Assembly (NCBI GenBank): GCA_965649825.1
Contig: OZ287694.1
Coordinates: forward strand, 62,001-126,000
Origin: Penicillus capitatus
Taxonomy: Eukaryota > Plantae > Chlorophyta
Length of the DNA: 64,000 bases
Direction of reading: 5' to 3'
Shown: positions 2,792-62,025 of the stretch, piece by piece
Position numbering within the stretch: position 1 is the stretch's first letter
Layout of the letters: the number at the start of each line of letters is the position of its first letter
The notes under the pieces: model-generated
Told to the model about the DNA's origin: nothing
Seen by the model: the letters and a program-made list of their open reading frames with translations, nothing else
Database searches by the model: none
Position numbers and translations under genes: made by a program

Positions 2792-2889
2792 ACCTCCCTC
2801 TGTATCATCATCTTTGAAAGGAGACAGATGATATCTCTTAACTCGAACAGACAGCACAGCTGACACCGTTTTGTTTTGTAAGTCCTCTT

Positions 2890-3398
2890 TTACTTTGGCG
2901 CAGCTCTCTTGGACGTACCTACTGGAACAATATACGTTGCCGCTATCCCCATCAGTGCAAATCTACACGTTCATCCCTCAGGCCAACGCGCTGTCTTTGC
3001 GAGGAGAGCAATACATGAGTGAACTCAGCAGTTGCTTGTAGTCGGCCGTGTCTGTCCTCATGTTTGCAAAGGCGACCGCCACGCAGAAAACCGAGAACCA
3101 CGCAGCGACCTTCATCTGATGCCATCCACTCAGATGTCACACTTCGAAACAGGTCACTCTTCTGGGTCTACCTTCACAATGAGCGCAATCATACCGAAGA
3201 TGAGAGCAAAGAACATCATTGGGTCTTGGGGCTGCGTATCTGGATCCACCACCGGCCTTTCATACTTCCTCGCCTCGGCAGGACGCCGCGGGTCGCTCTG
3301 CACCTGCCACCGCCGCCGAACGCCTTCGCCTCAACGACTGCGAACGAACATACTCTGATGGGTCGACTCGAACTGCCACTCGATTCGGCGCTGCGCAT
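2890..3398 (-). CDS. WDR83OS: PAT complex subunit Asterix (UPF0139/WDR83OS family), 4 exons
   Basis: Spliced product contains SDPRRPAEARKYERP, DPMMFFALIFGMIALIVK|MKVAAWFSVFCVAVAFANMR and DYKQLLSSL|IFALMGIAATY, collinear with the Asterix motifs SDPRRP, KWCAW and FANSR. Not visible in the ORF track because the exons are short. Confidence 0.8.
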
Positions 3399-3595
3399 CG
3401 TGCAGAGACGCCAGCCACTCTCGAACGAAGTTTGATGATGGGTTGGTTATACACAACGGCACAATGGTGTTCATTTTCTGGCACAAATAAATAAATTGTC
3501 ATGTCTCTTGCTGTTCCCATCCTCATGCCGCTGAGCAACCCGTTTAAATGTCTTCTCGTCACATCTACTAAACCCACGCTGCCGTCTTCTTCTAT

Positions 3596-17700: not shown

Positions 17701-20700
17701 CTGCCTCATGAAACTGCTTCTTCAGCAGGAAGTACTCGTGATGCAGGACCTTCTCAGAGTCTTGATCTTCCACAATGATCCAGAACGGCTCAACGAATCC
17801 ATGCACGCTGTCCTCCCACTGATAGTCCGGCGTGATGGTGAGATCGATTTTGAGGACGGAGCGGGTGATGGGCTGAATCTGGGCCGCCAGTTCCAGTCGA
17901 GGGAATTGGTGGATCAGTCGATGGAGGAGCTTTCCGAGTCGTGGCTGTCGGATCAGCTCGCCCAGTTCCTGACTCGACAGGTCATAGTATCGCTCCCACG
18001 GCAGATCCTTTTTCTCCAGCTTCAGGAGAATGTCCCGCTGAATGTTGGGAAACTGTCTGAGGGGCGTCTGACTCGCCCACATGCGTTTCTGCACCATCTT
18101 ACAGAGATTGAGCGCCTTGTCTGCCACGGCCGCCCATCCTCTCTTGAGTGCAATCTCGAACACGCATCGCATCAAACGGGCGGCGCTCTGTGTGACGTAC
18201 ACCATGTCCGACATCAATGCCAGTCCTTCCAGTCTGAGATTGGAGATGTAGGCCTGAAGCAGGACATTGATCTTGGCAGACGGCTCCTCGACGCCTTCCT
18301 TCACAGGAATAGGCACACGTTCGATGAGCTTGGCCAGTTCCAGTTTCTCCTCCTCCCGCACCACGATGTCTTTGAATTCGTCCGACAGAGAAAAGAGGCG
18401 ACAGATCTCGATGTCCCCCATCGTGGGCTTCAGGTATTGGTTGAAGGTCGCGATCGATGTGTAAGACACGTAGTAATGGCTGGCAATTCTGCCCAGATCT
18501 GTCACCTGGAAGACTCCGGTACGTCGATCGTATTTGATGAGATTGTTGCGATCGAGTAGGACGGCGGCGGTGTGACAGAGGTCCATCATCTGCTCCTTCA
18601 GTGTGGGATCCTTGAAGGGCACGTCCAACGGAACGCTGTACAGGTCAGGGTTTTTCAGCATTCGGATGTAGAGATAGGTATATCCCAGCCATTCCACGGC
18701 GTCCTTGACGTTCTGCACCGTTCCCAGAACGATCTCTGCGTTCATGGCATTGGGAAGCGCCGCAATGAGCTGAGATTCGATGGCCAGCTGCTGGTTGAAG
18801 AGGGAGAGGTAGTACTGCAGCTCCGTTCTGCCCGTGATGATAATACCCTCTCCATACGAGTCGTACTGCGGTCGTCCAGCTCTGCCAAACATCTGCATCA
18901 CGTCCAGGGCATCGAGCTCATCCCAGCTGCCTTTCTGAGGATTGTAAACCTGTGTGCCCTTGATGATGACGGTATGCGCCGGGAGATTGACACCCCATGC
19001 CAACGTCGCTGTCGACACGAGCACCTGAACGTGGCCATCTGAAAACAGATCCTCCACCAGGGATCGATCCACTCGCGGCATTCCAGCGTGGTGAATGGCA
19101 AATCCAAAAGGAAGCAGATCTTTTAGATCAAGATCCTTGCACGCCTCCGCTTCCGTCTCCAGAATCTCCCGAGAAGCCGAGTCTTCGGGGATGAACTTGA
19201 TCAGGGCGTCATTGGCCAGCGCCTTCTGTTTAATGAACCGCGCCGTTTTGGCCGTTTCTTTGCGGGAATGCACGAAAACCAGAACCTGTTGCTGTCCAGC
19301 CGACAGCATCACTTTCTCGTAGCAGATCTCGTTCATCAGCTGGAAACGCTGAAAAGGTTTCTTGACGGTCACACCGACGTACTGCTGCGCCAAGGGACAC
19401 GGCCGATAGGAATTGTCAAAGTAGAACAGCCCCTTCCCGCTCTTGACTCTCAGTAGCGCCGCCACGTCATCGTAGTTTGGCAACGTCGCCGACAGCGCCA
19501 CGATGCGAATCATCTCCTGCGTCGATTCGATGTGACGCAGCGTCCGGGCAATGATGCTCTCGAGCACTGGCCCACGACTGTCGTGCAGCAGATGAATCTC
19601 GTCGATGATCAGCAGACGGACCAGATTCGTGTACGTCCGATCTCCAGACTTGCGTGTGATGATATCCCATTTCTCCGGAGTGGTGACAATGATCTGCGTC
19701 TCTTCGATTTCGGAGCGGGTCAAATTGATATCGCCCGTCAGTTCCCGCACCACAATGCCAAACTCCTTCAGGCGATTGCCAAAGTTGCCAACCATTTCGG
19801 CGACCAGTGCCTTCATGGGCGCCACATAGACGATCTTGAACGCGTCTTTGTCCAACTCGCCATCCGACTTCGTATGCAGACCAATCTGATGCAGAATCGT
19901 GAGCATGGCCACGTTCGTCTTGCCGGATCCCGTCGGGGCACAGAGCAAAAGATTCTCGGCCGAAAACATCGCCGTCTCGTACACGCGACTCTGGATCCTG
20001 TTCAGCGCCGTCATGCTGCTGAACGCTGGCTGTGCCCAGGCTGGCATGCTGGAGATCTTCACCAAAGACTCGTCGGCTTTGAAAGGCGTCGGCTTCGGCG
20101 CCGGGATGTGCACTTCTTCGTATCCCTTCAGCGCCGTGCGGTAGGATCCTTCGGGCAACTGACAGCTACGGTTGCTCATGAAATGCCCTTCCTGTGCGAA
20201 GCGCATCTTCTCCAGATCCAGCATCTTACGTTTGGCACCCGCCTCTCCATGATCTTCTCTGTCTTTCGCGCCGCCGTTTTTTGTGTTGCGCGATTTGAGT
20301 TTTCTGGCCTCTTCGCGAATCGAACGCTCCATGGCGTCTTGCCGCTCACGTGCACTCGACCGCGTCGTTTTGAGTGCATCGAGAATGACGCTGAGCTCCA
20401 CGGACTGCCCCATCTGCTCCTCGATCGCACTCCTCTCCTTCTCATCTTGCGCCCGGGCCAGTTTCATACACCAGACGATCTTCAAACGATTCACCACGAG
20501 CTCCTTGATCAGATCAAACTTCTCATAGTCCAACAGTGCCACCAGACGATTCTCAACCTCCCTTCCATCCTCCTCCTGGTCGGGCAAAGAGTGCGTGATT
20601 AGACATTGTAACAACTGGCAGCAGAGATCTCGAACCTGCAGTGCTTCGAACACTTCTTCTGCCAGTCTTTTCGACGTGTTGGCCTCAATCCCTTCAAAAC

Positions 20701-21800
20701 TCTTCGAAATTCGACGCTGAAGCCAATAGGCATCGATTTCCTGAACGATCGGCCCTGCAGCAGACATCCCTTTATCGACGAGGGAGTGATTCGTGGATGC
20801 CACCTGTCTTGTCACTGTCGATAGGACCTTCCCCTGTCTCCTCATCCACCTTCATGCCCATCTCCTCGGTGTCTTCCTCTCCCTCCGTTTCTGCCTTCTT
20901 CGCATCTTCCCTCTCCTCCTCTTCCTCGTCGCTTCCCTGAGACCGAATCTGGCGAATCGGATGAGAGCTACGACCCATACCATGACTTCGTCGAGTTCTT
21001 GATCGTCGTCCTCTTCGTCCTCGTCCTCAAATTCGACAGCGACGCCGAATTCTGTCTCCATGTTATCCATTTCCGCCGCATCTTGATTTCTAGTGACACC
21101 GCCGCCGTCAGCTGTCACATCAGATGTGGATGGGTTACACATACCTCTCTTCCTCTGGAACAAAATCCGTCATCAGCTTCCCGATAGCGACAAACCGTGC
21201 AAAGGCATCCGAAGACATCGATCCCAACAACGCCTCGCACTCTCGATGCTTCTCCGGATCCTAAACGTCCCATCCATCAGCGTCACTCTTTCTCACACAT
21301 CTCCCCACTTGAAGGCGATCCGTTCGCAGAACCGTCAAAACTTCTTCGGCTGCACCGAAGATGACGTCCTCAGGCTGATCCCCAAAAAAGCGCTGCAGCA
21401 TGCTGAGCAGCGCCTCGTAAGCGTCGCGCGTTTGGCGCGTCTTGGGTCGATAGAAACCAAACGTCTCGACGTCGAGCACCGACACACCCCCTCGCAGTTT
21501 CTTCGTCCTTCGCGTCTGTTGTCGTCCTTCGATGTCCACCTCCGCTTCCATCTGTTCTTGGCTCTTTCTGAGCTTCGCCTTTCGCTCTTCGAGTCCTTCC
21601 GGTTTGCTGAACTCCACTCGGTCGCCCATCTTCCCTCGCATACGTCCCCACAGCGACTCCGGCTCGCCGCTCGGTTCATGAGAATCGCGGTTGCGGGTGT
21701 CTGATGTCAGTACGAGACTCGAATTCGCCTTGTACTCATACTGCTTTGAACGCGCGTGCGCTTCTGCGCCGCCGGCCTTCTTATCTTGAGGCGTCGGCAT
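14712..21800 (-). CDS. BRR2: U5 snRNP 200-kDa RNA helicase Brr2
   Basis: [21 protein letters not shown]-terminus; two DEIH/DELH helicase cassettes ([17 protein letters not shown]); Sec63 domains; C-terminal [13 protein letters not shown]. Confidence 0.97.
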
Positions 21801-45020: not shown

Positions 45021-48000
45021 TCAGATGAATTTTTCTCCGTCTTTCGAAATCGAGTTTCGCCAGTTGAGCCACCCGTCCATATCTCCCGGAGTGAAATTTC
45101 CTAAACTACAGCTGACGGATCGCGTCTTCCATATCCCGGCCATGTCCTGTTCGTAGAGCGGCTTCAAAAGCGTCGGCGAATCGACGTCGAGATGCACCAC
45201 CTACACATACCACCCAAGGCTCGGCGTTACAGACTGCCCACCTCCAAACGCACCGCGGTGTCTGGCGTGCACTCTTTCCATGTCGGCTTGAATCGCCCGT
45301 CGTAGTCTGGATTGTCCATACGATCGGCGAGCAGTATCCCGACCATCGCATCTTCAATCCCTTTCATCCGCGTGTGCCACTGAGGCGCATCTGTGGGATG
45401 GTATGTCCACCAACGGACCTTCTTCATGGCGTGGAAGACATTGTCGCGCGATACGAGATAACTCCATCCCGGTGCATAGCCCACACCCTCGATGCGTTTC
45501 TGCGTCTCCGCGCTGATCTCGTCATAGCTAAAGTACCATTTGGACGTGGGATCGCGCACCATTTCGAATCCATTGGGATTTGCCATACATCCCTTGTACA
45601 CGTACTGCATATACGCGCCGAAGGGTGGATTCGTCACCGTCCCGATGACCTTGGGCACGCGGACGTAGACGTCGTCGTCTGCCTTCATCATATGGGTGTA
45701 GATTTCGGGATCGGCCAGAACGTATTGCATCATTCCGAGCGTCTTATTCGACAGGCCGTTGTAACTGTCGTCGCCTCTCAGAATCACAATATCGTCATGC
45801 TCACGCATCTCCATCTCCAAGCGCTTCAGCATCGATGCGCTGCAGTTGACTAAACGGACAGACAGGGTGCGTTGAGGCAGGGAGACAGGGAGACGACCTT
45901 GATTGCCGACGAAGAATTTGATCTCCACGTGCGTTTCGATACTGAGGCCTTCCCGCATCCATGTCTGTCGAATCGCGTGGCGCCGCCTTCGACTCGTCTC
46001 GCTGCAGACGGCGGTGGTCACAGCAACAAACAACCGCACCTCTTCCCTCGTGTTTCTCCCCGCTTCGATATCTATCACCACGAAAGCGTTGGTCTGGATG
46101 ACTCGTGGGTCCGTTCCCTACCAGAGAGCTCTTTCATTTCCATCTTATCGAAATTAACATCTTCGGCAGAGGTCCACAGATAATCGGCACGGAAGGTATC
46201 TTGGAAGGGAACCATGTTTCCTGAACGGACAGGCACTCTATGAGAATAGAAACGCAGAGATGCGATGGTCCTTACCAGGAACAGCGAATTCGACCATGAC
46301 ATTTTTGTCCTTCGTCTCTGGCTCGTGTGTCGTCGCTTTTCGATAGAGCCAGTCGCCGGGAGAAGAAACGTGTCCCGACGAGCGCGCGGCTTGGAACGCA
46401 GGAGAGTTGTATCGACTCGCTGCTGCGTTCAGTCCCTGAGAACGACGCCTGAGACGATGCAAGCGACTGGCGGCGGACGTTGTCGCGTAGGTTTTTAGAT
46501 GGAAACAATTTTAAAGGTGGGCGCACGTAGACCTGTGAAACGTAAAGTCTTACAAACGAAAGACGAGATCTGTACATCGACAACGCTTTTATAGGGTACT
46601 TTATTTAAGGAACAAAGAAGGAATATTCTGAGAAGATTCCGGAATCTACTTGGAATCTGTGACGTAGAGCCGCGGGTCTATTTGTGGATGGGAAGTTATA
46701 GAGAACCTACGACCTGTCACTTGGAGATCGACACAAGTGTAAGTAGATGAGCGCATTATCGTGAGCGCTACGCCTTAACACGACATGGGCCCACCTATCT
46801 TCTGTCTAATCTCCGAAGGAAGTCACGATGGACATTGTGCAGCGTCGAACCATTGGGCATACGGATATCCCAACGGTGGTCACTATGTTCCTTTACTACC
46901 ACACAAGGATAGACCCATTTGGAGTATAGTTTGGAGTCGAGGCGGTCGGCCAACTTTGAGTTGTACCACGAGACCTCTGCTCCCACTTCCATGGAACGGT
47001 TCTTGACTTTCTTGTGGTGTCTTGTCTTATTTTGCTGGTGTGCCTTGATTATTCGTTGATATGCTAGTCCTCGGTCGGTGTCTAACTGTTGTGGACTAGT
47101 TGTCGTGCCGTTCCGTTGTGTGCCAGTCAGAAGGTATTGTGGACAGAACAGAGTCGTACTATGGATCGTTCGGTTGATCTCATGCACGCTCGTGCTCACA
47201 TGTGTCGTCCAATCACCTCCCTTTTCCGCCCATATCCTCCGAAGTCGATTTACGAGGTTTCGGTTGAACGCCTCGACAGTGCCCGCACTTTTGTGGGAAT
47301 AGGTTGGCGTATGTAGCAGATCTATTCCGTGCTGTGCGCAGGTACTCTCGAAGCTCCTGGCAATGAAGGCGCTTCCGTTGTCGCATAGGATTCTTTGTGG
47401 AGCCCCAAAGTTTCGTGCCCATTCGAGTACCAGCTTAATAGCCTGTGCTGCCGAGCACGTCTTACATGGGCGCCCCACGCCAAACTTAGTGAAAGCGTCG
47501 ATCCCGGTAGCGATATACCGAAACCCGTGGCTGCCACGGTTCAGCGGTCCTATGAAGTCTAGACACAGTGTGTGGTTCGGGGATGGACTGTCAATCATAC
47601 CCAAGTCCACCTCCGACCGTGGGTTGCGAAACATTTGGCACGTCTCGCAGTTATTGACGTAATCTCGCACGTCATTGAAGTCGTTCGTCCAGCGGGTTCC
47701 GTCGGACCGCAGGTTCAGGAATGTCTTCTTGACCCCGAAGTGGCCTGCATGAGCCTTTTTGATGAGCTCGGTCCGTTCGTCCGGAGTGAGGGATACGGAG
47801 TTTACCTGATATCCCTGTTGCTTCTTCTTGGTGTGAAATTCGACAGGTGCGTTGTCTCTCCATCGGCTGAGAAGATCCGCTATCACGTTGTCCTTCCCCT
47901 CTACAAAACAGAAGTGGAGACGATCATGGGAAAAGTGGTGCCGGAGCCAGCAATGCTGTCTCTGGATCCGGAGGTCCTTGAACTTGTGCAGGAATGTGGG

Positions 48001-51000
48001 CTCCTTGAGCCAATTGACCGTAGCCATGTTGTCGGAGTAAACGAATACCTCCGTCTGCTTGATCACAAAGTAACATTCCTTCAAGGCCCGTACTATTCCC
48101 ATCAATTCTCCCAGAAAACTTCCGACCCTCTGTTTCGTCGTGAAGGATCCAAAGAGAACAGGTTGCAAGGTCGAGTTAAGCAATACGTATCCGAACTGGT
48201 TGAGTGGGTTACCACACCAATCCGTATACAGATGGAATGGCCCCCTTCTTTCCAACGTCAGTCGGTACGTACTGATGCATAGAGATTGAACTGCGTCCTT
48301 GTAGATCTCGTCAGCTTTGGTGTAGTCATTGTGTTCGCGCTTCAGGAATGGCTTGAGCCGCGTAACGATCGCGTCGTATTTGTAACAGTACTGTGCCAGT
48401 TGCTGGCACAGACCCATGGCCTTCTGAACGTCGTGACGTGATGTGATTGTCGGCAACTTCTGGAGTATGGCCTGGGCCCTGTGGTAGGGGTTTAGCGTCC
48501 CGGCACTCAGCTCAGTACCCAGAAAGCTCACCGACGTCTCAAACCAGTCACACTTTTGGCAGTTGATCGTCAGGCCATATTCGTCGAAACGTTTCAATAA
48601 AAGCTTGGTCTTGTCGAGGAGTTCCTCCTCGGTTTCGCCGCCGATCAATATGTCATCAAAGTATCGGACCACATCCAACCCTTGTAGGATGTGGGTCATG
48701 CGGTTATTAAAAAGCTCCGGACTGACGTTGACGCCCTGCGGCAGTCTCCGAAAGCCGTACGTCACGCCGTTCCAATGGAGTGCAAAGAAAAGCGAAATAC
48801 TGTCATCGATGGGGATGGAGCCGTAGCCGTGAACAATGTCCACGATGGTGTATACGGTCCACTTGGGATCCACCTTCTGGATGATGTTGGACACCGGAAT
48901 GATGGTCCCCCCTTGCGTCCCTTCGAGGTACGTGTTGATGTCGCGGAAGTCAATGGTGGGCCGGATCTTGCCATTCGGTTTGCGTATAAAGTTCAAAGGT
49001 GCTACGACGGCGTGTATTGCCTCGGCAACAGACAACGGTCGTATGACACCCTCCTTGTTTAGCGAATCGATCTCTTTTGAGATCTCTTCGTTGGTGAGAT
49101 CCGAGACGTAGTTCTCCCTCCAGCATGGCTTAGGCTCGCCGTGCCAACAAAGATCCCTGTCGCGGACCCTGATGTCCCACAGCCTACTGGTCGTCGGGCG
49201 AATGGTGTCCGAAAAGACCAGGGGAAATTCTTCTCTTAGCCGAGCCACTATCGCATCCTTGTCGATTGGTGTAGTGATGCTCATGATATTGACACGTTTG
49301 GTCTTTATTCGCAGCGGGTACTCTGTCCCATCAACATCGACGATGGATTCCACGTCACCCTTGGCACAGCACAATCGCATCTTGCTGGTGATATGCTGTG
49401 GAACATCGGATTGGTTGAAGATTACCACACTGATCTGACCATTCGTGCGTACCTTGACCTTGCAGAAAATGTTTTTATTGTGGGTGCAGTCAAAGAATGC
49501 AGTCCAGGTTGTTGTTTCCGAGAACTTGAAAGGTAAGATGATACGGCGACTCCGAAAGGGTCCTAACACAAAACTTCTCCCTGCCATGAAGACGATCCAG
49601 CCGTTTTGCTTGAATGGGAATAGCTCCCGGTCAATGGATTCTGTGACTTGGAGTGGTGAAGGTGTTAGTCTTTCTTCTTGTCTATTTGGCGGTGTCTCGT
49701 CGTTCCAGTTCGATTTCACTAGTACCAGGCGTTTCACGTGCGGCTTCTGTTGTGCGTCATGCGCCTGCTGAAAAACAGGCTGGTCCCTCAGTTTTTTGAA
49801 ACAGAAACGTTGTGGATGAGTATTTTGTTACCTTTGTCGTCATAGACTGCATCCTCCTCGCAGTTGAGCTGCAACTTGAATGCCTGAAGGGCCTGCATTC
49901 CCAGAATCGGGCGTTGGACACCTTCACAGACGACAAATGGTATCTCGGCGCTCTGTTTCCCGAGGGTGCACAACAAAGAGATCTCGCCACTCGTCTTGGT
50001 CGTCTTGTTGTTAAAGCTGGTCACGTCCCGAACTTTCGACGACCTTAGGACCAAGTTGTGTTTCCTCGCCAGCTTCGCTGGAAGGACATTCGTTTGCGCA
50101 CCGGTATCCAGCAGGCAAGAGATCTTTCCGGCAATGTCCTCCATGTTGAGTGGGACATTGTACTGTAACATCCTTCGAGACTCTTGGCGCTGTACCGGAT
50201 TCGTCTGTGCCACGGTCCTTGATTCTGGTGCCTTTGGAGTTTTCGTGACCGTGGGGCAGTCCTTCCAGGAGTGGCCTTTCTGACCGCATCTTTCGCAGGT
50301 GTGCCCGACGTCTTGACGCATGTTCTTCCGGCTATCCGCCCTGGCGTGTCCTCGACTGTTCTGTTCCTGTTCCAGACACTCGTCGATGATCAGTTGCACA
50401 CGCGGCCAATTCTCTGCATTTCCCCATGGCAACCCACGCAGGCGTGACTGGATGTGTGCATTCGCGATGTTGAAGATCCGCTCAGTCGCTGTAGCGTACT
50501 TGAGTGGGTCTTGTACCAACTCAAGTAGCTTCGACATTCTTCGTGCGAACTGAGACAGATTCTCCTTTCGTTTGGGCAACAGCGTGTGCACGTCCTTCAT
50601 GGAGGGTCCCTTCTCGTTGTGTCTTGTGGGTGCGTGACTCACTGGTGTGCGTGGGGTTGCGGCATCCTTTTCCTGACGCTTTTGTCCCTCTTGCTGCCGT
50701 CGCGTGGCCTTTCGAACGTCGGGTGACAATTCAGGGTGATGCTGCTCACAGCTAACCTGCTGAATTCGTGTCCGATCCTCGACTGCTTCTAATCGTTGCC
50801 CGATACTGGTAAAGCTCGCTTCAAGACTTGCCTCCATTCTCCCTTGTCTATTGACAAGTCTCCTTTCGAGGTCTTCGGCGCGTCTCATGAGCTCCTCTTG
50901 CATTGCCTGTATACCTTCCATCAGGGATTGTATTAAGCCTCCTTGTTCAGTGTCTCGACGGGTCTCTGGTAACGGATCTGGGTGGATTTCAGTCACTATA

Positions 51001-53457
51001 TTCTGTTGGTTTGCCCGTCGTGGCGACTGCTGAGGCGGCGGAGGCGGTGGCGACTGCTGAGGCGGCGGAGGCGGTGGCGACTGCTGAGGCGGCGGAGGCG
51101 GTGGCGACTGCTGAGGCGGCGGAGGCGGTGGCGACTGCTGAGCCGACTCCTGGGTGGTCTGTTCTTGAGTCAGTTGTTGCGCCTGAGCCCTTTGTCCCCG
51201 CATCAGATTCCACACGATTCTGAGTAGCCAGCAAATCCCCTGGGTTATGGCTACGATTCGCATCACAACCTTGCGGATGTTCCTGAATACATTCAAAATC
51301 CACGCGGCGACGTTGTATAGAAGCATAGCAGCGCCTACCAACTGCCAGCCGTTCCCCGTAGCCAGGGCGCTACGAATTGCTTTGATTCCAAATTTATCCC
51401 ATAGTGAGCCTAACACCCATGTAACTGCGTTATCACGGGTACCGGTTAGCCATTTTATAGAGCGGTCGAGGAATGTATCATTCCCGTGACCGCTCTCCCA
51501 ACCGTTAGCCTGGCTTTCGCAGATGCAATCGTCTAGAGCCGTCTTCATGTTGCCTGTGTGTTCGTTGATCTTGTTTATTGTCTCGCGGATATTATTGAGA
51601 GTGTCATTGAGGTGCTGCCAATCGACGTTAGAACTCTTAGCATGTGACTCTTGTGACGTTTCAGGTCCTTGGTTGTCTGTCGACGAACCATTTACCGTGA
51701 TGTTCAGGAACTGGGTGATGCCGTCCAAGGTCTCTGCGACGTGTCGCACTTCTCCTACGAGAGAGGACTTCCTAGATGGGAAGTTGTTGATGATCGAGAC
51801 TGTCGCAGTCGTCAACAAACTCGCTGGGGAGAATACGGACAACACACCTCTGTTTGTCGCCCAGTTGACGATCCCATGAGCAGTAAGACCTACGACAGCA
51901 CTAGTGATCATTGCGTCAATATAGTCTGGCCAAGTGATGTCGATTCCCATTCTGAAGTCGGGGATCATGGACCAAGATTGCCCATCTTCGACAGGTAGAG
52001 CATCTCCCATCTCGTGCAAATTGAAGACATTTTCTGGAGGGAGTTCTTGTTCTGTCCATTGGTCTTCGGACTGTTCGGACTGTTCGGACTGTTCGGACTG
52101 TTCGGACTGTTCGGACTGTTCGGACTGTTCGGACTGTTCGGGATCGGATCGCGGAGCCTCCTCGTCGAATAGATCTTCCGCCAATTCTACCGGAATCTCG
52201 TATTCGTCATATTCGAGCTTGTAAGCTTCCGCGCTGGGTTCCGAATCCATCGGCAAGTCCGTATTAGTTTGTACGTCTTCATGTTCTGCGACGGGGATAG
52301 CGAACTCAAAACGCCTGCGGAGGGCTCTAGCTGAGCCGGCTATGGTGCGTCTGTCTTCTTCGGCATTTGTGTCTGTACACACGAGGTCATATATCTTCTG
52401 TCTAGATGCGTCCAGCACCGCTTTTGGTTCCCACGTCTGTGAATGAGGATTGCCCGGGATTAGTAGGAAGAAGGACATTCCTGTAGCCAGAATCGGCTTT
52501 CCTCCCCAATGTATCAATGAACCCTCGCCGAGAAGCATGATCAGCATATTGGCTTCCTCGTACGTAATGCCTTCGCTTGCGTCATAGAAGATGATGCCGT
52601 TAGGGCACTTTTTGACGAAGACCGCGATCTCCCTTTGAATTATTCTAGCCTCATTCACAGATTTGGATTGCGGTTTAATATACTTGAAACAGCTGCTCTT
52701 TTGCAGACTAGGCTCATTCTTGATTCCGTTAACCAGCGAGTCGCATGTACTTGTCGTACAGTAGAGAACTGTAGACGTCGCTTTATCGTAAAAATTGTTG
52801 TCTACCTTGTCGTTTATACTACGAGCAAGGTTATCGACATACTGATCTATCCAGTCTCCGCCACCGCGGATGTTTTCCTGGATGCTTGTTAGGGTTTTAT
52901 TCCGTAACCCTATTATTTCATCCTTCCAGCCAAACCATGAGCCGTGCGTGACGGCGGCAAAGTGTAGAAGAACCCACAACAGTATTGGAAGCACTCGCTC
53001 CGAAACCATGTCGCGTAGGTTTTTAGATGGAAACAATTTTAAAGGTGGGCGCACGTAGACCTGTGAAACGTAAAGTCTTACAAACGAAAGACGAGATCTG
53101 TACATCGACAACGCTTTTATAGGGTACTTTATTTAAGGAACAAAGAAGGAATATTCTGAGAAGATTCCGGAATCTACTTGGAATCTGTGACGTAGAGCCG
53201 CGGGTCTATTTGTGGATGGGAAGTTATAGAGAACCTACGACCTGTCACTTGGAGATCGACACAAGTGTAAGTAGATGAGCGCATTATCGTGAGCGCTACG
53301 CCTTAACACGACAACGTACCCATTGATAGGAGACGGTCACCAGAAGTAAACAGCTCAGAATAAAAATCACGGTGTGCGAGAAGAGAAGCGCATCTGCACG
53401 GAGATGATTATTTCCGAACAACGTGTTCAGTGCCGCAGGCAAAGCGCGCCGCTTCAT
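45021..53457 (-). CDS. GT31 beta-1,3-galactosyltransferase-like (copy 1); intron 1 carries the retrotransposon
   Basis: Exon 1 (53457-53320) encodes the TM anchor ending SYQW. Exon 2 begins at 46448. Later exons give RRHAIRQTW, DDSYNGLSNKT, MKADDDVYV, G..YLVSRD and EDAMVG. Intron-1 position matches the paralog. Confidence 0.8.
46481..46785 (-). repeat. 3' LTR
   Basis: Identical by eye to 53009-53313; terminal inverted TGTCG...CGACA. Confidence 0.95.
46790..46803 (-). promoter_or_regulatory. Polypurine tract
   Basis: AGAAGATAGGTGGG lies 4 nt before the 3' LTR and contains the pol stop codon. Confidence 0.7.
46795..49797 (-). CDS. pol: Pol: dUTPase-like domain, reverse transcriptase, RNase H, integrase (reached by -1 frameshift)
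   Basis: RT LPQG and YFDD; RNase H YTD...E...SDN...ADLLSR; integrase HHCC, LDFIG, CDNG, VEAFN and a GPY/F-like KLYSKWVYP. The frame stays open upstream to the slippery site. Confidence 0.95.
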   Translation of the reverse strand, partial: KKLRDQPVFQQAHDAQQKPHVKRLVLVKSNWNDETPPNRQEERLTPSPLQVTESIDRELFPFKQNGWIVFMAGRSFVLGPFRSRRIILPFKFSETTTWTAFFDCTHNKNIFCKVKVRTNGQISVVIFNQSDVPQHITSKMRLCCAKGDVESIVDVDGTEYPLRIKTKRVNIMSITTPIDKDAIVARLREEFPLVFSDTIRPTTSRLWDIRVRDRDLCWHGEPKPCWRENYVSDLTNEEISKEIDSLNKEGVIRPLSVAEAIHAVVAPLNFIRKPNGKIRPTIDFRDINTYLEGTQGGTIIPVSNIIQKVDPKWTVYTIVDIVHGYGSIPIDDSISLFFALHWNGVTYGFRRLPQGVNVSPELFNNRMTHILQGLDVVRYFDDILIGGETEEELLDKTKLLLKRFDEYGLTINCQKCDWFETSVSFLGTELSAGTLNPYHRAQAILQKLPTITSRHDVQKAMGLCQQLAQYCYKYDAIVTRLKPFLKREHNDYTKADEIYKDAVQSLCISTYRLTLERRGPFHLYTDWCGNPLNQFGYVLLNSTLQPVLFGSFTTKQRVGSFLGELMGIVRALKECYFVIKQTEVFVYSDNMATVNWLKEPTFLHKFKDLRIQRQHCWLRHHFSHDRLHFCFVEGKDNVIADLLSRWRDNAPVEFHTKKKQQGYQVNSVSLTPDERTELIKKAHAGHFGVKKTFLNLRSDGTRWTNDFNDVRDYVNNCETCQMFRNPRSEVDLGMIDSPSPNHTLCLDFIGPLNRGSHGFRYIATGIDAFTKFGVGRPCKTCSAAQAIKLVLEWARNFGAPQRILCDNGSAFIARSFESTCAQHGIDLLHTPTYSHKSAGTVEAFNRNLVNRLRRIWAEKGGDWTTHVSTSVHEINRTIHSTTLFCPQYLLTGTQRNGTTTSPQQLDTDRGLAYQRIIKAHQQNKTRHHKKVKNRSMEVGAEVSWYNSKLADRLDSKLYSKWVYPCVVVKEHSDHRWDIRMPNGSTLHNVHRDFLRRLDRR
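49763..49797 (-). promoter_or_regulatory. -1 programmed ribosomal frameshift signal
   Basis: In-phase A_AAA_AAC (49797-49791) directly before the ORF1 UGA, a 10-nt spacer, then the hairpin GCCUGUU-UUUC-AGCAGGC. The -1 frame is the pol frame. Confidence 0.85.
49788..53009 (-). CDS. gag: Membrane-protein/Gag/protease fusion polyprotein (1073 aa)
   Basis: Signal peptide, N-glycosylation sequons, TM helix, MHR-like [14 protein letters not shown], CCHC knuckle [14 protein letters not shown] and protease LLDTGA, all in one ORF. Confidence 0.9.
   Translation of the reverse strand: [1073 protein letters not shown]
51021..51140 (-). repeat. 27-bp coding tandem repeat (QQSPPPPPP x about 4.5)
   Basis: Perfect units GGCGACTGCTGAGGCGGCGGAGGCGGT on the + strand. 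Confidence 0.9.
52065..52140 (-). repeat. 9-bp coding tandem repeat (SEQ x about 8)
   Basis: TTCGGACTG x8 on the + strand. Confidence 0.9.
52991..53008 (-). promoter_or_regulatory. Primer binding site (initiator-Met-like)
   Basis: TGGTTTCGGAGC directly abuts the 5' LTR and differs at 2 positions from the plant iMet PBS TGGTATCAGAGC. Confidence 0.7.
53009..53313 (-). repeat. 5' LTR with TATA box and UGUAA poly(A) signal
   Basis: TATAAAAG at 53121-53114 and TGTAA at 53082-53078 on the minus strand. Confidence 0.92.
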
Positions 53458-53976: not shown

Positions 53977-55805
53977 TCACAATGTCTTCTGGCCATCTTC
54001 AAATCGCGAGTTGCGCCACTCGTACCAGGCAAACCAATCACCCGAAACAAAATCTCCAGAACTGCATCGAACCGTTTTGCTATCCCAAACGCCGTTTCTA
54101 TCTAATGTATGCAATGCATCGAAGCGCTCCGGAGCGTCAATATCGAGATGGATCACCTAGAAACCCAGCCATCGAAAAACGGAAGAGATGTGGCGGCGGC
54201 GGGGCATACGGCAGTCGCAGGTGTGCATTTTCGCCAGGAAGGTTTAAATCGGTAGTCGGAGTCCGGTGAAACGTAGTTGCTCACCAAGATGCCGACCATA
54301 ATGTCTTCGAGGTTGTGAAACTTGTGCTGCCATCTCGGCGCCGTTGTCGGCGTCAATTCCCATTTCTGATATCTCTTCAGCGCATGAAAGGCCACATCGC
54401 GGGAAAGAACGTAACCCCATCCAGCCAGATAAAGTGTCCCAGTCACCTCCTTAGCCATGTCGGCGTCAAACTCCCCGTACGGTTGATACCATTTCGACAT
54501 CGGATCGCGGAACGGCTTGAAGCCTCTTTGGTTTTCGATGTACCCTTTGTACACGTGTCGCATACGGGGCACCATATGTTCGTCGTTCAAGCTATTCAGC
54601 ACTTTCTTGATGCGGACGTAGACATCTTCATCCGTCTTCAGAACGTGTGTGTACTTGGCAGGATGTGACAGATAGTACTTAAGCATGCTGTGTGTCTTGT
54701 TGAAGAGATTCTCGTAGACGTCGCGCTGTCGGATGAAAGCAATATCGCCATGTTCGCGTATCTCTTTCTTCAGACGTCCAATCATCGTTCTATTGCATCC
54801 CTCTGGATCACACAAAAAAGAGTGAGATCCGAAAGCGCGCTCCTCAAAGACGCACCCGGTTGTCCGATGAAGAATCGGACCTCGATATCGACGCCCATCT
54901 CCTCGGCATCGCGCATCCACGTGCGGCGAATACCGTGACGGCGTTCTCGACTTTGTTCGCTGCAGGCGGTGGCCGTGACGGCAATGAACAGACGGATGTT
55001 GTCCATCTCGAGTCGACCTTCTTTGACATCTGTCCAGTAGATCAGCAAGCACACCGGGTGAGCAACGCAGGCTGTCACATCGCGTGCATCTTGCCTTGGA
55101 TCTCTGCCTGCTCGAGCTCTTCGTAGCGTATGTCTTCTTCGTGGGTGTAAGGGCGTCCAGGATAGAAGGCCTCCGAGAAGTCGACTTCGTTTCCTGCACC
55201 GCATAACGTTTTTTTCCTGGCGGCGGGCGATAAGGGTGGGCACCGGCAACTCCGAAATCTACCAACAGATCCTTCCGCTGAGAACGGTGCGTTGCAAAGG
55301 ATGCCGGGCGTATTTCTTTTGTCAGATTGCCAATGGCCATGGTTCTCGATAAGCCTCTCGATATCTGGTTCTCTGCCACGAAGAGACCTCGCTTCTCATT
55401 CACGGCGGCATCCTGACGCCCCTTGCGCTGTACCTCGACATGCATTCTCTGCACAGCACAGGAAACGATCCCTTATCATCTCCCACGATAGCGGAAAGGT
55501 CGATAGAGGTACCCATTCGTAGATAGTGCCTAGCAAAAAACCGCAGGAGGTGGCAAGGAAAAGACACACGAGGAGCATCGATTTCTTGGAACATAGGAAA
55601 TGCACATAGGCGTTCCATCGCCCTGAAGGGAATTCCCCATATAGAGCGTGCAGAGATATAGAGAGAGCGTCGGTCGACTTTGCTTGCTCGTGTCTTCAAC
55701 ATCCACCAGGTGCCGCGCATTGCTGTTGAGGCCCAGGTTAAAGAAGCTCTGCGTTGCGTCGAAGGTCTTGGGTCCTCGCGTCCTTGCCGAATAGCCGTAC
55801 GTCAT
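53977..55805 (-). CDS. GT31 beta-1,3-galactosyltransferase-like (copy 2)
   Basis: TM anchor ending IYEW|, RRHGIRRTW, DVYENLFNKT, LKTDEDVYV, GWGYVLSRD and LEDIMVG. Paralogous to copy 1. Confidence 0.88.
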
Positions 55806-56512: not shown

Positions 56513-59500
56513 ATGTCTCGCGGGAGGCGGTTGCTGTTTTTCACGTGCCTGACGTGCCACACGGTATGGACTGCCGCCTTCGAGACGGGTCAGGAGCGGA
56601 TGGATGGGGAGCCTAACGGACGGAGCGGTAAGAGAACGCCGGACGGGCGAACTCCGCATCGCTACCGCGAGCGTTGTATCGAACCGTCGAACGAACTGCC
56701 CTGCGCGATACCGAACGCACTCACCAAGTTGTGAGATCGGTATGGCTGTGCAGATGATCGTCCCTGTCGTCTCACCAGAGAACAGCGGGATGGGATGCGG
56801 AACAAGAGCGAGGGCGTTTGGACGCTGACACGAACCTATCTCGAAGGACAGGAGAGCGACGTGCAGGCTGTGGTCAACTGCACCCGCAAAGGAGACCGTG
56901 TGCGATTACCAGCAGGGGCGACATTTGAACTGACCCACAGAATCGAGATTCCGTGGAAACTCACGCTGAGCAGTTTTGCCGAGTCTACGGGCAGGGCAAG
57001 CTCCACAGGCTCCCGGCAGCATGAAGGTGTGGTGTTGAGATGTCGACCAGGCGAAGGTGCTTTTCTCATCAAGTGATGTTCTCTCCTTTGCGGCGTCTGC
57101 GTCTGATGACGTGGGGGTTTAGATCTGGGGATGTTGTCTTGGAGGGCATCACGTTTGCGAACTGCTCTTTGGATGATGCGAGGGTGCATGGCGCCATTGT
57201 GGAGGTGGCGGATTGCTCGATGGCGTCTCGGTCTAACGACATCGTCCTGCGTCACGTGCACTTCCAACAGAACGCATTGCGAGGCGGCGCGGCTATCGAT
57301 GTCGGGCATCCCGCATGCGCCTCGGTTGAGATGCGTGATGTGACCTTCTCCCTTAACGAATGCTCGGGTGCGTGCTTCGGTCGTCTGGCCGCTAACAATA
57401 TCCTGAAGAATGTGAGAATGGAGCGGAATATGAAGTCTGATGATGACGAGCACGTCTTTGCTATGCTCTCCCTGCCGTCGGAATCCGACACGCAAGCCAC
57501 TGGACTGATCGCAAAAGGAAACGAATTGACGGTGGTGCTCGATGACTCTGGCGCAGCTAAATTGGAATTGAAGAAGTCGAAGTTTGTCGGGAATCGTGGA
57601 CGAAGCGCCATTCACTTGATGGGGACGAAAGAGGTTATGATCTCGAATTGCAGTTTTTCCAGGAATGCAGCAGAGGGGCTGAGTGGGGCTGGGCTCTTCT
57701 CCAAGAGCGTCGAGCGTCTCGACATGTCTAACTGCAATTTTGAGGAGAACGTTGCGAATGAAGGAGGAGCGATCACCTCTGAAAACACTTCGCTGAGAAT
57801 CGAGCACTGCGACTTCATCGGCAACCGTGCAGAGGAAAACGGCGGCGCGATTTTTGTCAGAGGTGGAGATTTGAAGATGTCCTCCTATTCTCGATGCACT
57901 ACCAACACAGCAAACACGTCTGCTGGCTGCATCTATCTCTCGCAGATGGATCGCTTTCGCATTGAGAGGACCAACTTCACTCAGAACAAGGCGATCGAGG
58001 AAGGCGGGGCATTAACCGTCAGGGAATCGAAAGGCAGAATGCAACACTGTATCCTCGAAAAAAACCGAGCCAATAGCGGTGGGGCAATGAGCATTGCTCG
58101 TCGGTCGAAGATCAAGATCATGGAGTCAGACATCCTCGCCAATAACGCCTCTCTCCATGAAGGCGGCGGTATCTGGATCAAAGAAGAATCCAGTATCACC
58201 CTTATCAATGTGACGTTGGATGAAAATTCTGCGGCGAAGTATGGAGGGTCTATCAGTATGTCGCACTCTAACTTGATCGCCCGAAACATGACGATTCAGA
58301 ATGGGTCTTGCGCGATGAACAAAGGCTGCGGCGGCGGAGGGATCCGAGCGAACGACGGCAGTCAGCTTAGGATATTTGACTCGACGTTCCTAAACAATAG
58401 CGCCAGTTATGGTGGAAGCTTGAGCTTCAAGAAGGCATCCGTGCACGTACGCCGTTCCGACTTCAACGATTCTCATGTCACGGCGCGTGGTGGGGCACTG
58501 AATGTCGAAGTGGGGTCCACATTGGTCCTCAAGCAATCAAAGATCAAAGGAAATGCAGCGAATCTAACCGGAGGGGGAATCCGATGTCGATCTGCGAACG
58601 TTACCATGCATCGTGGTCACTTACTCGACAACAAGGCTGACAAGCACGGCGGCGGCATCATTGCCTCAGACGCGTGTACTGTGATGATGAACGGGACTGT
58701 CGTTCGCCGCAATCGAGCAAAGCGTTACGGTGGAGGCCTCTGCCTTAAACTGAAAACCGTGACGAACCTCGCGGACATCATTTTTGAGGGAAACACTGCG
58801 GAGGCGAATGGTGGAGCCATCTACGTGAACGTAACACCCTCAGCGCCCATCACCATCACAACGTGCACGTTTGGCCGCAATGCAGCCAAGAACGGCGGAT
58901 CCATTGCTCTCAGGGAATCAACTGCCAAGATCGAAGATTCAGACTTCGCAAGAGGATCTGCCGAGTCGGGTGGAGGGTGCCTTTATATGGATCATCATAG
59001 CGACGTGGAGCTTTATGAGGTGAAAATGGCCAGATGCCGGTCAGACAACGGAGGTGCGATTCATGTCAAAGAATCTGTCCTGTCAGCCGAGCAGCTCAAA
59101 ATCCGTCACTGCCGGGCAAACCGATCGGGAGCTGGCGTCTTCTCAGCTCAGCGATCCAAGATGCGGTGCAGCTTCTGTAGATTTGAGGAGAATCATGCCG
59201 ACAGTACTGGCGGCGCCATATCGATTCTGTCACACAGCGATCCGCTGAGGCGGGCGTATCAGTTCTTCCACTGTCGCTTCCGCGAAAACCGTGCTCTCGT
59301 GGGAGGTGCGCGACGAAGAGATGCGTGCAAAAAGTGTAACCGTAGCACCTTTGTGTAGGGGCCATCCATTTGCTGAACGAGGAGGACGAGCACTGTGATG
59401 ATCCCATGGGGAACTGCACGTTCGTTGCGCTCGTTCGCAGCGCCTTCATCCAGAATTCCGCATCATTGGCCGGCGGCGCCGTCTTCGCCAGCAATCCAAA

Positions 59501-62025
59501 TGCCTTTTGGTACCATTGTTCCGCCGCACTGGGAAAGCCCCCTTACCATCGACACGATTTCTCTTCGATGCGGCCAGTCAACTCAACAAAAGAGCCCTGT
59601 CGAGCAAGGAACAATAGTGCCGTGCAGTTTGGGAAGTTCGTTGGATCCTACGCTCGACGAGTGAACTTTACTGAGCAGTACTTTGGCAGCGGCAGAACAA
59701 CGCATCCAAACAGCACGACGCTGGTGATTGAAGATCACAGGAGTGGCGGGCCACTGCCCGCGATCACCGTAACTGTGATGGATGCCTTTGGACAGGGCCC
59801 AGCTTTCAGGACAGCGAACAAACCGGTCGAAGCCGTCATGACTTCGGAGGATGAGAAATTGGTCAGTGGGCAACGACACGCTAACATGTCTGGCGGCAGT
59901 GCTACATTTCTTGTAGAGGCCATTTCGTTGCCTCCGGGAAACTACTCTATGACGATCTTTTTCCGCAAGACGACGGCCTTGCCACGCATTCATATTTTTG
60001 TCCATTTCCGTAACTGTGCTCTCGGCGAACGGACGGAATTGGAGAATATCTGTTCGGCGTGCGGTGCCACGGCGTTCAATTTCGACCCCGAATCTGGGCA
60101 ATGCCAACCGTGTCCCGAAAACGGCAACTGCACAACGAACGTCATCCATCCCAATCCCGGCCACTGGCACAGCGATCCCTGCTCGGACCACATCCAGGAG
60201 TGCCTCACACACGAGGCCTGCGATTATGAGGAGCGACAACAAAGACTGGTGAATGCTTCAAGGGACATCCACAGCTGCGAAGAGTGCGATGCAGTCCTGC
60301 TGGGCAACTACAGCGACGCCCAGTGCCGACAGGCACGAAGCCGTTCGTGATGACGTGCCTTGGTATCCTGATTGTGTGTTCTAGGGATACAAGGGTCCCC
60401 TCTGTGGTTCGTGTGAAGATGGATATGGACGTACGCGGACACTGGAATGTGCAGAGTGCCGTCAACGTCAACTGAATGTCCTGCTGTACTTGCTCTCGGT
60501 CTTGCTGCTGCTTTTTCTGGCGAGTTTTGCCGTCAAGAGCAACCTTGTCTCCACTGTCGCCATCTGTCATCCGACTGTTCGTCTTGGCAGTTCCTCGGCA
60601 GAGAGCGAACCGGCTGACAGAGGGGAAGCATTCGTCCAGATGACTGAGATAAGGGAAGCATCTTCCACGGACGCCATCGACCGTCAAGAGTCTTCACAAC
60701 ATCGTGCATCACCTGAAGATCTGTTATGCAAGATGCATCGCGCCAAGGAACAACTGGTAGAAGTGTTCAAGGTGACCAGCCACGCACTTCTGCTAAAGGT
60801 TTTTTGAAATTCTCCGTAGATTTCGATCAACTTCTTCCAAGTCGTCGCCATCGCTGTTTCCCTCAACATGAACTGGACAGCGTCCATCATTAGGCTTTTT
60901 TCAGTTGTAGGTCAGTGGTGTTCCATAAGAGGGACGTGCAGATTCCATTTTCTTTTGCGCGCAGATTTTCTGGGTGGTGCGGCAACGGAGACGGTGACGC
61001 TGCCAATCGATTGCTTTCTTCCCTCCGATGCCAGCATTCCAAGGTCCGTGCTGAGGACGATCATCTTCATGGCCATCCCAGTTATGGTTGCCGTCTTCTT
61101 CGCTGTCTTCTGGGCCATCGCCCTTTACAAGTTCGCCAAGACCTGGCAATACTTAGCCAAGAGACTCCTCTTGAGTTACTTGGTCATCGCCTACATCTCC
61201 TACGAATCCGTCACCAAGACAGCCGTCAACATCCTGGTGTGCGTGACGGCCGACGTCTCGTGTGGCGGCGCTGTCAAACCATCCCACGACTACTGGGCGG
61301 TGGACACCTCTGTCGAGTGCTATGAAGGCGCCCATTCCGTGCTGGTCGGCACATTGGGCTGGCCCGTGGTGCTCCTCTTCTCCCTGGGCTTTCCCGTTGG
61401 CCTCGCTTTCGCCCTGGTGTCCGTCCGTCGGTACGCTCCGGAGCGCGATGTGTGGTACAACGAAGCCACTGGGTTTCTGTACCGCGCCTATGATGACCGA
61501 TTCTTCTTCTGGGAGTCGATGATCATGCTCAGGAAATCGCTCCTCGCTGTCATCGTCGCCTTTGGCTATACTTTAGGACCGAACATCCAGGGCGTCCTCG
61601 CTATCAGCGTTTTGACGGCGGCGTTATATTTCCACACCCTCTTTCGTCCTTTTGATCGAGCGTTTGATCAACTTAACGCTTATGAAAGCGCCTCACTCGT
61701 TGTTTCTCAGTTAGCTTTTATCAGCGGTCTTCTGCTCAGTGATGATCGTGTGTCCGAGGAGGTGCACATTCTCCTCAGCATCTTTCTGATCACGGCCATC
61801 GGCGGGTTGTCTTTTTTCTTCTTTCGATCCTTCTGTCGCACTTTTGTCAGCTATGCGCGTATTCAATTCAAACTCGATGGGGTCGAAGACGTCGAAGCCT
61901 GGAGCCAGGCTCGTGTCCTTTTTACTTTTCTAGCCCTTCGTGTTCAGAAATATTTTCGTTTCTTAAGCAACGATCGTGTCCAACGACGAGAAACCGATTC
62001 GACTCGTCCAACCAGTGCAGCTTGA
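56513..62025 (+). CDS. Large secreted/membrane protein: Pmp-like parallel beta-helix repeats, Cys-rich region, multi-TM C-terminus
   Basis: Signal peptide; many GGA(I/L/V) and FxxN repeats (57040-59358); C-x2-C EGF-like/TNFR-like segment; GYKGPLCGSC; about 7 TM helices (60868-62025). Confidence 0.8.

Follow-up and report, generated by a model that had tools for sequence, protein, structure and literature searches.

A predicted nucleotide-free AAA+-like domain behind a signal peptide at the N-terminus of a Ty3/gypsy-type Gag-protease polyprotein

The window analyzed in this study is a 64,000-nucleotide stretch of DNA from Penicillus capitatus (contig OZ287694.1, positions 62,001 to 126,000), and window positions below are counted from its first letter. 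A complete long terminal repeat (LTR) retrotransposon of 6,833 bp was detected on its minus strand. The first open reading frame (ORF1) of this element starts with about 600 amino acids in frame ahead of gag: a signal peptide, a domain of ~217 amino acids with a predicted but catalytically dead AAA+ fold, and a predicted glycosylated membrane region. The element combines an ordinary Ty3/gypsy-type core with a hitherto undescribed N-terminal module, predicted to be luminal and membrane-bound, that is headed by a new, divergent and nucleotide-free AAA+-like domain. Full-text searches of the literature found no paper in which a torsin- or LAP1-like domain is connected with an LTR retrotransposon.

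Structure of the element and of ORF1

The gene order in the element was ORF1 (membrane module, gag and protease (PR)), followed by pol (reverse transcriptase (RT), RNase H and integrase (INT)). The features of the element, from its upstream to its downstream end, were as follows.

46481-53313, minus strand: complete LTR retrotransposon, 6,833 bp (identical direct repeats, ends read, Pfam domains)
53314-53317, minus strand: upstream copy of the target-site duplication (TSD), ACGT, read directly; the same four bases as 46477-46480
53009-53313, minus strand: 5′ LTR, 305 bp, with TGTCG...CGACA termini and an internal TATA-like box; 100% identical to the 3′ LTR
52991-53008, minus strand: putative primer-binding site (PBS), starting with TGG straight after the CA of the LTR and encoding the first residues of ORF1 (MVSER...)
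49788-53009, minus strand: ORF1, 1073 amino acids plus stop, with its ATG at 53009
52941-53009, minus strand: predicted signal peptide, aa 1-23, with a hydrophobic core and T-H-G ahead of the likely cut (hydropathy peak at aa 2-20)
52290-52940, minus strand: AAA+-like domain, aa 24-240 (AlphaFold, Foldseek, profile against PDB, and dN/dS)
51924-52289, minus strand: acidic low-complexity linker, aa 241-362; 31% D+E, 39-67% identical and variable in length among copies
52065-52141, minus strand: perfect 9-bp tandem repeat inside the acidic linker, 8.6 copies, in frame, encoding (SEQ)n
51201-51923, minus strand: membrane/glycoprotein-like region, aa 363-603 (hydropathy, sequons)
51020-51142, minus strand: perfect 27-bp tandem repeat, 4.6 copies, in frame, encoding (PPPPPPQQS)n
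50256-50297, minus strand: CCHC zinc knuckle (C-x2-C-x4-H-x4-C), aa 905-918, at the nucleocapsid end of the gag-like stretch (Pfam zf-CCHC, E 0.013, short of the curated cut-off)
49866-50165, minus strand: retroviral-type aspartic protease, aa 949-1048, with D-T-G (gag-asp_proteas, Asp_protease_2 and RVP above curated cut-offs)
49791-49797, minus strand: heptamer A_AAA_AAC, in frame with ORF1 and adjoining its stop on the upstream side
46795-49827, minus strand: intact pol frame with RT, RNase H, and the zinc-binding and core parts of integrase (Pfam RVT_1 2.9e-22, rve 1.9e-15, Integrase_H2C2 4.9e-11)
46790-46807, minus strand: putative polypurine tract (PPT), purine-rich, 4 nt upstream of the 3′ LTR (read directly)
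46481-46785, minus strand: 3′ LTR, 305 bp (direct-repeat comparison)
46477-46480, minus strand: downstream copy of the TSD, ACGT (read directly)

By its gene order and features (TG..CA LTR ends, TSD, PBS, PPT, a CCHC gag and the order PR-RT-RNase H-INT), the element is of the Ty3/gypsy type, and it is intact and recently inserted. Pol lies in the -1 frame relative to ORF1 and is open from 49827, 37 nt ahead of the ORF1 stop; the canonical-looking heptamer at this site suggests that pol may be expressed from ORF1 by -1 frameshifting. No tRNA gene matching the putative PBS was found in the DNA scanned, and a search for Rfam families gave no hit. Since the ATG of ORF1 straddles the junction between the 5′ LTR and the PBS (52991-53009), the start of the signal peptide (MVSER) is encoded by the PBS as well, and copies with only about 34% identity elsewhere still share these residues. 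The putative PBS and the N-terminus of ORF1 constrain each other's sequence.

A first-pass annotation of the window, made by eye, had proposed a torsin/ClpB-D2-like pseudo-ATPase domain at 52290-52790 and considered it to be carried by the retrotransposon. The latter was confirmed: ORF1 runs on from the domain to the CCHC knuckle and the protease, pol comes next, and identical LTRs flank both. All four peptides on which the proposal was based were found in the minus-strand translation (aa 79-93, 128-146, 156-183 and 229-240). The interval corresponds to aa 74-240 of ORF1 and was correct for the β1-β5 core of the predicted fold, but the folded domain starts earlier (aa 24, position 52940), with two N-terminal helices. 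The domain sits behind the signal peptide at the extreme N-terminus of the Gag-protease polyprotein. The hydrophobic character of this peptide was kept in the divergent copies P0005, P0006 and P0010 despite sequence change.

Downstream of the domain, the acidic linker (122 amino acids) consisted of 31% Asp+Glu and 2% Lys+Arg, and both tandem repeats of ORF1 differed in copy number among element copies. The membrane/glycoprotein-like region contained two hydrophobic pairs, aa 363-407 and aa 557-603, the second of which was followed by basic residues (RNIRK). The segment between them (aa 408-556) was predicted to be helical and contained one CxC and four N-x-S/T sequons, three of which were kept in copies 57-71% identical. 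An AlphaFold model of the middle region (aa 335-612) was all-helical, but with a predicted local distance difference test (pLDDT) score of 38.6 it was unusable and was excluded from the fold searches; a profile of this region gave no sequence match in PDB.

Fold and degenerate motifs of the N-terminal domain

When the domain was searched as a single sequence, nothing was found in Pfam (E ≤ 1) or PDB (E ≤ 10); none of the families named in the first pass as places to look, Torsin (PF06309), LAP1_C (PF05609) and AAA_2 (PF07724), was therefore matched. The corresponding domains of four relatives (P0008, P0005, P0007 and P0003) gave no Pfam match at E ≤ 5. On the other hand, a profile of six aligned sequences of the domain family (alignment A2, also the basis of the AlphaFold model) recovered from PDB, at E ≤ 0.1, solely Hsp100-type D2 AAA+ chains, comprising 19 distinct sequences in one register: Skd3 (human CLPB; E 4e-4 to 8e-4), ClpC (0.01) and ClpB (0.013-0.1). 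The alignment to Hsp100 D2 was collinear from α2 through Walker B, α3 and the hairpin to β4, with a 10-residue stretch on the Walker B strand, a 17-residue stretch on the hairpin, and "SFFLLIPG" on the sensor-1 strand.

The AlphaFold model of the domain had a mean pLDDT of 78.3 and a predicted template-modeling (pTM) score of 0.81. Its elements followed one another along the chain as α(-1), α0, β1, α1, β2, α2, β3, α3, β-hairpin, β4, α4, α4′ and β5, which matches the AAA+ core order β1-α1-β2-α2-β3-α3-β4-α4-β5. The HCLR-type hairpin before sensor 1 was present (strands 142-145 and 148-151, between α3 and β4) and aligned with that of Skd3. A Foldseek search of PDB with this model gave 84 matches with E < 1e-3, with a probability of 1.00 to the D2 domains of Skd3, ClpB and ClpC, to TorsinA and to LULL1. 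The best 50 of the 84 were Hsp100-type D2 domains (Skd3, ClpB, ClpC and one ClpX), TorsinA (6oif_A, 5j1s_A) and LULL1 (5j1s_B). LULL1, the domain of which is lid-less and nearly the same length as that of the element, had the highest template-modeling (TM) scores in both normalizations among the 50 matches listed: 0.59 and 0.56, with a root-mean-square deviation of 5.8 over 225 columns. Sequence identity to known AAA+ proteins in the Foldseek alignments was 10-15%. Against viral models (BFVD), only generic (phage) Clp/AAA proteins were found at the top, and no viral glycoprotein was matched.

Profile, AlphaFold and Foldseek analyses therefore agreed with the assignment made by eye, to an AAA+ large subdomain such as those of ClpB-D2, torsin and LAP1/LULL1, and the modeling shows the ~217-amino acid domain with a predicted AAA+ α/β fold of this group. 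The similarity is one of fold, and not of membership in the torsin or LAP1 family. The residues that distinguish the domain from an active ATPase, or that are conserved in its family, were located as follows.

52743-52760, minus strand: C84-x4-C89, located where the P-loop has been lost (β1/α1 junction)
52689-52691, minus strand: C107, the third conserved Cys
52578-52583, minus strand: D143-A144, occupying the Walker B position where β3 ends (IIFYD-A), aligned on D-E of Skd3
52311-52319, minus strand: R231-R232-R233, where the last helix ends, just before β5

The degeneration described in the first pass (loss of GxxxxGK, change of the Walker B DE to DA, and absence of a helical lid) was found in each case. 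In the model, about one residue lies between β1 (aa 78-84) and α1, with the sequence C-T-T-S-T-C-D; because α1 starts one residue after β1, there is no room for GxxxxGK[ST]. In the A2 profile alignment to Skd3, D143 coincided with the Walker B Asp and A144 with its catalytic Glu, and the sensor-1 Asn of Skd3 was aligned with Gly. The acidic linker of variable length follows β5 directly, in place of a lid, and sensor 2 is absent because there is no lid. In the Chlorella homologue described below, the Walker B Asp was also replaced, by R/N. Without a P-loop, Walker B Glu, sensor-1 Asn or lid, the domain should not bind or hydrolyze ATP and is, judging from its primary structure, a pseudo-ATPase.

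Among the three Cys residues close to the former nucleotide site, C89 was invariant across the family, and C84 and C107 were kept in all the rows covering them (five of the six), including both Chlorella repeats. This cluster fits an oxidizing luminal location. At the C-terminal end, one Arg of the box taken by eye for an Arg-finger box was conserved: R233 was invariant in every family sequence covering it, including both Chlorella repeats. It was the only invariant residue of the RRR box, for which the second Chlorella repeat has Q-H-R. Apart from the C89 region and "FLL" of β4, no stretch of the family was better conserved than the surrounding A-x-A-L-x-x-R-[IF]-x-x-x-[VI]-P. In the model, R233 comes just after the last helix and lies three residues ahead of β5. 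The Arg residues of LAP1 (R563, at the end of helix α5) and LULL1 (R449, at the base of α5) are both ~20 residues before the domain end (PMC4358337, PMC4999309). The modeled position of R233 is therefore comparable to that of the LAP1/LULL1 Arg finger, this likeness being by helix-end position only. Since the Arg-box half, used as its own profile, found no AAA+ match in PDB, R233 could not be demonstrated as an Arg finger by sequence. The RRR box was also considered as a dibasic processing site, which is unlikely: it lies inside the fold beside a core strand, and is Q-H-R in one Chlorella repeat.

Selection on the domain and a cellular homologue

Five loci carrying the element were compared: the window copy, L001, L002, L004 and L005. 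ORF1 and pol were both intact in the window copy and L001, while one frameshift broke ORF1 in L002 and one broke pol in L004; L005 had one large internal deletion. The LTR pairs of the four full-length copies were 99.7-100% identical, indicating that the element family was active recently. The domain of L005 (6001-7548 of this locus, ERZ26696514; protein P0005) was 34% identical, and its open frame keeps the N-domain and integrase despite the deletion. An exhaustive HMMER search of 1.8 billion representatives yielded only eight relatives: seven belonged to the element family, as further copies or fragments, and one was the Chlorella protein P0008. A JGI metagenome match was discounted, being a single weak one of 40 residues inside an unrelated laminin-like locus.

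The domain is under purifying selection in several diverged lineages of the element. The ratio of nonsynonymous to synonymous substitution (dN/dS) in the N-domain was 0.21 between the window copy and L001 (dS 0.23), and 0.21-0.29 against the more distant L004 copy (proportions of nonsynonymous and synonymous differences, pN and pS: 0.27 and 0.58-0.66, respectively). Values elsewhere in the element were 0.07 for RT, 0.08 for the RNase H region and 0.14 for integrase. The domain was kept, with an open frame, in lineages that are 34-58% identical.

Between the window copy and L001, DNA identity was 90-92% in the LTR, N-domain and RT-INT (dS 0.23-0.30; RT-INT 0.25-0.30) and ~70% in the linker, membrane region, gag, protease and start of pol (dS 0.8-1.4). 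Against L001, L002 and L004, the identity of the LTR, N-domain and RT-INT was about 90-94%, in mosaic copies. The copies are mosaics, in which the linker-to-protease part derives from a more distant lineage, and this pattern indicates recombination between diverged lineages of the family. Exceptional constraint had been considered as the reason why the domain was 90% identical to that of L001 (most other parts of ORF1: 53-67%), and was rejected, since dS was low there (0.23) and in RT-INT. The identity between these two N-domains is due to recombination history as well as constraint, and it is dN/dS that shows the constraint.

P0008 is a protein of 727 amino acids encoded by an intron-containing gene of Chlorella ohadii (GCA_025026875.1, JADXDR010000023.1; 6001-12125 of locus L003). 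A SAP domain lies at its N-terminus (Pfam E 6e-4, under the curated threshold), and the protein further contains one hydrophobic span and the AAA+-like domain twice in tandem. Its similarity to the element domain was detected by phmmer (E 2.7e-6; 17-23% identity to the window domain), and hhalign, comparing the element domains with the two Chlorella repeats, gave a probability of 95.3% and an E-value of 2e-8 over 165 columns covering β1-β5. When P0008 alone was searched against PDB, Skd3 was the sole match (E 0.086). The Chlorella repeats share with the element domain the Cys motif, a hydrophobic (hhhh) strand at the Walker B position, FLL in β4, and the A-L-x-x-R-I/F-x-x-x-V/I-P box; P0008 differs from the element protein in being cellular, with a SAP domain, one span, two tandem domains and no Walker B Asp. 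A profile search of a large collection added only fragments of Chlorella-type genes (P0011-P0017), in other GC-rich assemblies. No cellular homologue was found in the window's own host at the sensitivity of the searches made.

P0008 has the layout of LAP1: a chromatin- or DNA-binding N-terminus, a span, and a (predicted) luminal, nucleotide-free AAA+-like part (cf. PMC4358337). This LAP1-like layout occurs in a green-algal lineage, where torsins are said to be absent.

Possible function of the N-terminal module and neighboring genes

The first-pass annotation had described LAP1 and LULL1 as nucleotide-free, lid-less luminal AAA+ folds that give an Arg finger to torsins, in agreement with PMC4358337 and PMC4999309. 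LAP1 has no Walker A motif, α1 extended into the pocket, a degenerate Walker B motif, no C-terminal domain and a conserved disulfide (PMC4358337). The element domain resembles LAP1 and LULL1 (TOR1AIP1/2; 4TVS, 5J1S chain B) as a (predicted) luminal and lid-less AAA+-like domain without Walker A and with a degenerate Walker B, and also in its conserved Cys, its strictly conserved Arg near the C-terminal domain end and its membrane tether. It differs as part of a retrotransposon Gag polyprotein, and its Cys residues (C84, C89 and C107) are all near β1/α1/β2 with no C-terminal Cys, unlike the LAP1 disulfide to α1. Hsp100/Clp D2 domains (ClpB, ClpC and Skd3; AAA_2) were the only relatives detectable by sequence and the top Foldseek matches; compared with them, the element domain has lost the catalytic motifs and lid, is led by a signal peptide, and is Cys-rich. 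Torsins (5J1S chain A, 6OIF; Foldseek E 9e-6 to 4e-5) similarly have a signal and, behind it, a luminal AAA+ large domain of the HCLR type in which Cys residues are conserved. They keep Walker A and B, the sensors and the small domain and have no Arg finger; the element domain, conversely, has no nucleotide motifs and a conserved Arg.

The following model is proposed. The signal peptide would direct the domain and the sequon-bearing stretch into the endoplasmic reticulum (ER) lumen, which is continuous with the perinuclear space, while the later hydrophobic segments would anchor the ORF1 product in the membrane and Gag-PR would stay in the cytosol, which holds only if an odd number of these segments span the membrane. 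The domain would act as a non-catalytic docking subunit that offers its R233 face and Cys cluster to a luminal AAA+-type partner, either an ATPase of the host or further copies of the same domain. Docking might tie Gag assembly to the ER or nuclear-envelope membrane, as LAP1 and LULL1 tether and activate torsin, and the element protease could then free Gag from its anchor. A luminal location is supported by the N-terminal hydrophobic signal with a small-residue cut site, the three Cys by the former P-loop, and the conserved downstream sequons; the link to the nuclear envelope comes from P0008, the sole cellular homologue, with its SAP domain, span and two copies of the domain. Taken as one statement, the fold, lost motifs, signal and selection together with a docking-subunit function at the ER or nuclear envelope have, in our estimate, a probability of roughly 0.45, and the model is accordingly put forward as tentative.

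Several observations weigh against this model. The A2 profile missed the torsin, LAP1 and LULL1 chains present in PDB, LAP1_C and Torsin of Pfam were not matched by the domain (E ≤ 1), and the structural model is based on only six aligned sequences. The modeled domain has a β-hairpin before β4 and ends in a strand, whereas LAP1 is without the hairpin and has two helices pinned by a disulfide (PMC4358337); because the hairpin is kept and the domain ends in a strand, the C-terminal arrangement around the Arg is not identical to that of LAP1. The AAA+-like domain of LAP1 and LULL1 is C-terminal to the span, while that of the element is N-terminal to the membrane segments and behind a cleavable signal. 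The side of the membrane on which Gag would lie depends on the number of true membrane spans. Demircioglu et al. doubted that lid-less domains form stable rings, the lid being important for ring formation. Torsins and their cofactors have been described from most or all metazoans, and plants and fungi as being without torsins (reviews and recent work), and nothing marks the window host as an animal (its Brr2 is closer to land plants). Because the domain is without torsin/LAP1 sequence membership and torsins are reported to be absent in plants and fungi, the torsin-cofactor and nuclear-envelope part of the mechanism is inferential. The narrower proposal, that the element supplies an activator or adaptor of the LAP1/LULL1 type for a luminal AAA+ machine of the nuclear envelope and uses it to move membrane-anchored Gag particles into or across the perinuclear space in a non-animal host, is improbable in our judgment.

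LTR retrotransposons are usually described as consisting of gag and pol, in some cases with an env-like gene behind pol, and in gammaretroviruses the N-terminal extension of glyco-Gag puts Gag itself into the ER membrane. As a general-knowledge comparison, the element resembles glyco-Gag and env-bearing LTR retroelements in that a signal-bearing glycosylated membrane module has been added to a gag-pol core. To our knowledge, the env-like ORFs of LTR retroelements are separate genes 3′ of pol; the module described herein is 5′, in frame with gag, about 600 amino acids in length, and has an AAA+-like head. It may nevertheless be an Env-like ectodomain fused to Gag, with the first ~600 amino acids forming a type I glycoprotein (an AAA+-like head, a helical stalk or fusion part, and one anchor) with a Gag-PR tail, so that the module would be displayed outside budded particles and serve cell-to-cell or extracellular transfer instead of the nuclear envelope. 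The signal peptide, the conserved sequons, the helical stretch with CxC, and the hydrophobic segments before RNIRK are all consistent with this explanation, as is the all-helical AlphaFold prediction for the middle region, and an ectodomain outside with Gag inside would be the topology of an enveloped particle. However, that prediction is unusable at its pLDDT, no solved fusion protein in PDB was matched by sequence, the top BFVD matches of the head were Clp/AAA proteins and no viral glycoprotein, a basic cleavage site is missing ahead of the first hydrophobic pair (the RRR box being inside the fold), and the cellular homologue, with its SAP domain, speaks for the nuclear envelope rather than the cell surface. 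We regard this explanation as unlikely, although worth keeping in view.

A self-assembling luminal scaffold, in which the dead AAA+ domains bind each other through the Arg face and nucleate a Gag lattice with no host ATPase, is a similarly doubtful, if credible, alternative. AAA+ large domains are established oligomerization modules, the best-conserved motif of the family is at a subunit-interface position, and the tandem copies in the Chlorella homologue make domain-domain contacts plausible; nevertheless, the lid-less LAP1 and LULL1 were reported by Demircioglu et al. as heterodimer partners, and the importance of the lid for rings again counts against it. That the domain is a functionless passenger or a chance resemblance (a captured host fragment or an arbitrary leader) might be suspected from its lack of any Pfam or single-sequence PDB match and its 10-15% identity to known AAA+ proteins. 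The dN/dS of 0.2-0.3 at both shallow and deep divergence, the retention of the domain and its open frame among lineages 34-58% identical, the agreement between profile and fold searches, and the existence of a homologous cellular family make this highly improbable. An active torsin- or ClpB-like ATPase encoded by the element was rejected on sequence: in spite of the HCLR-type fold with a hairpin before β4 as in TorsinA and Clp, there is no GxxxxGK[ST] between β1 and α1, the Walker B Glu is replaced by Ala and the sensor-1 Asn is also replaced, and neither lid nor sensor 2 is present.

If the domain docks on a luminal partner, this would give a retroelement a new means of selecting where it assembles or of coping with the nuclear envelope. 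A role for torsin in nuclear-envelope budding and herpesvirus egress is documented. The element domains and P0008 together provide a small nucleotide-free AAA+ family outside animals, with a green-algal member that has the layout of an inner-nuclear-membrane protein, and whether LAP1-type adaptors are confined to Metazoa thereby becomes directly testable. Should the adaptor function hold, the Chlorella protein and the element would point to a torsin-like envelope-remodeling system, or an analogue built from Hsp100-type parts, beyond Metazoa and tapped by a retroelement.

Regarding the surroundings of the element, it lies between two paralogous ORFs of the Galactosyl_T type on the same strand, at 45227-46081 (minus strand) and 54153-55454 (minus strand), the first assigned by eye and the second by Pfam. 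The window also encodes a Brr2/SNRNP200 helicase (15553-20845, minus strand), split over at least two long ORFs. Its identity was 71-73% to land plants and 59-67% to animals, and at most 73% to any named relative. Long ORFs suggest few introns in the host, and since Brr2 is in long ORFs and without a close named relative, the window appears to come from an intron-poor eukaryote of a poorly sampled group. A large β-helix protein with repeats of the Chlamydia-PMP type was found, in this eukaryotic setting, at 57040-60350 (plus strand; Beta_helix E 2e-32, Chlam_PMP E 3.5e-18), and it apparently continues in the ORF at 59370-60350. Another copy of the element, in locus L004, has beside it a host gene, possibly informative about the host lineage, that encodes VWA and C-type lectin domains (2809-5028, minus strand).

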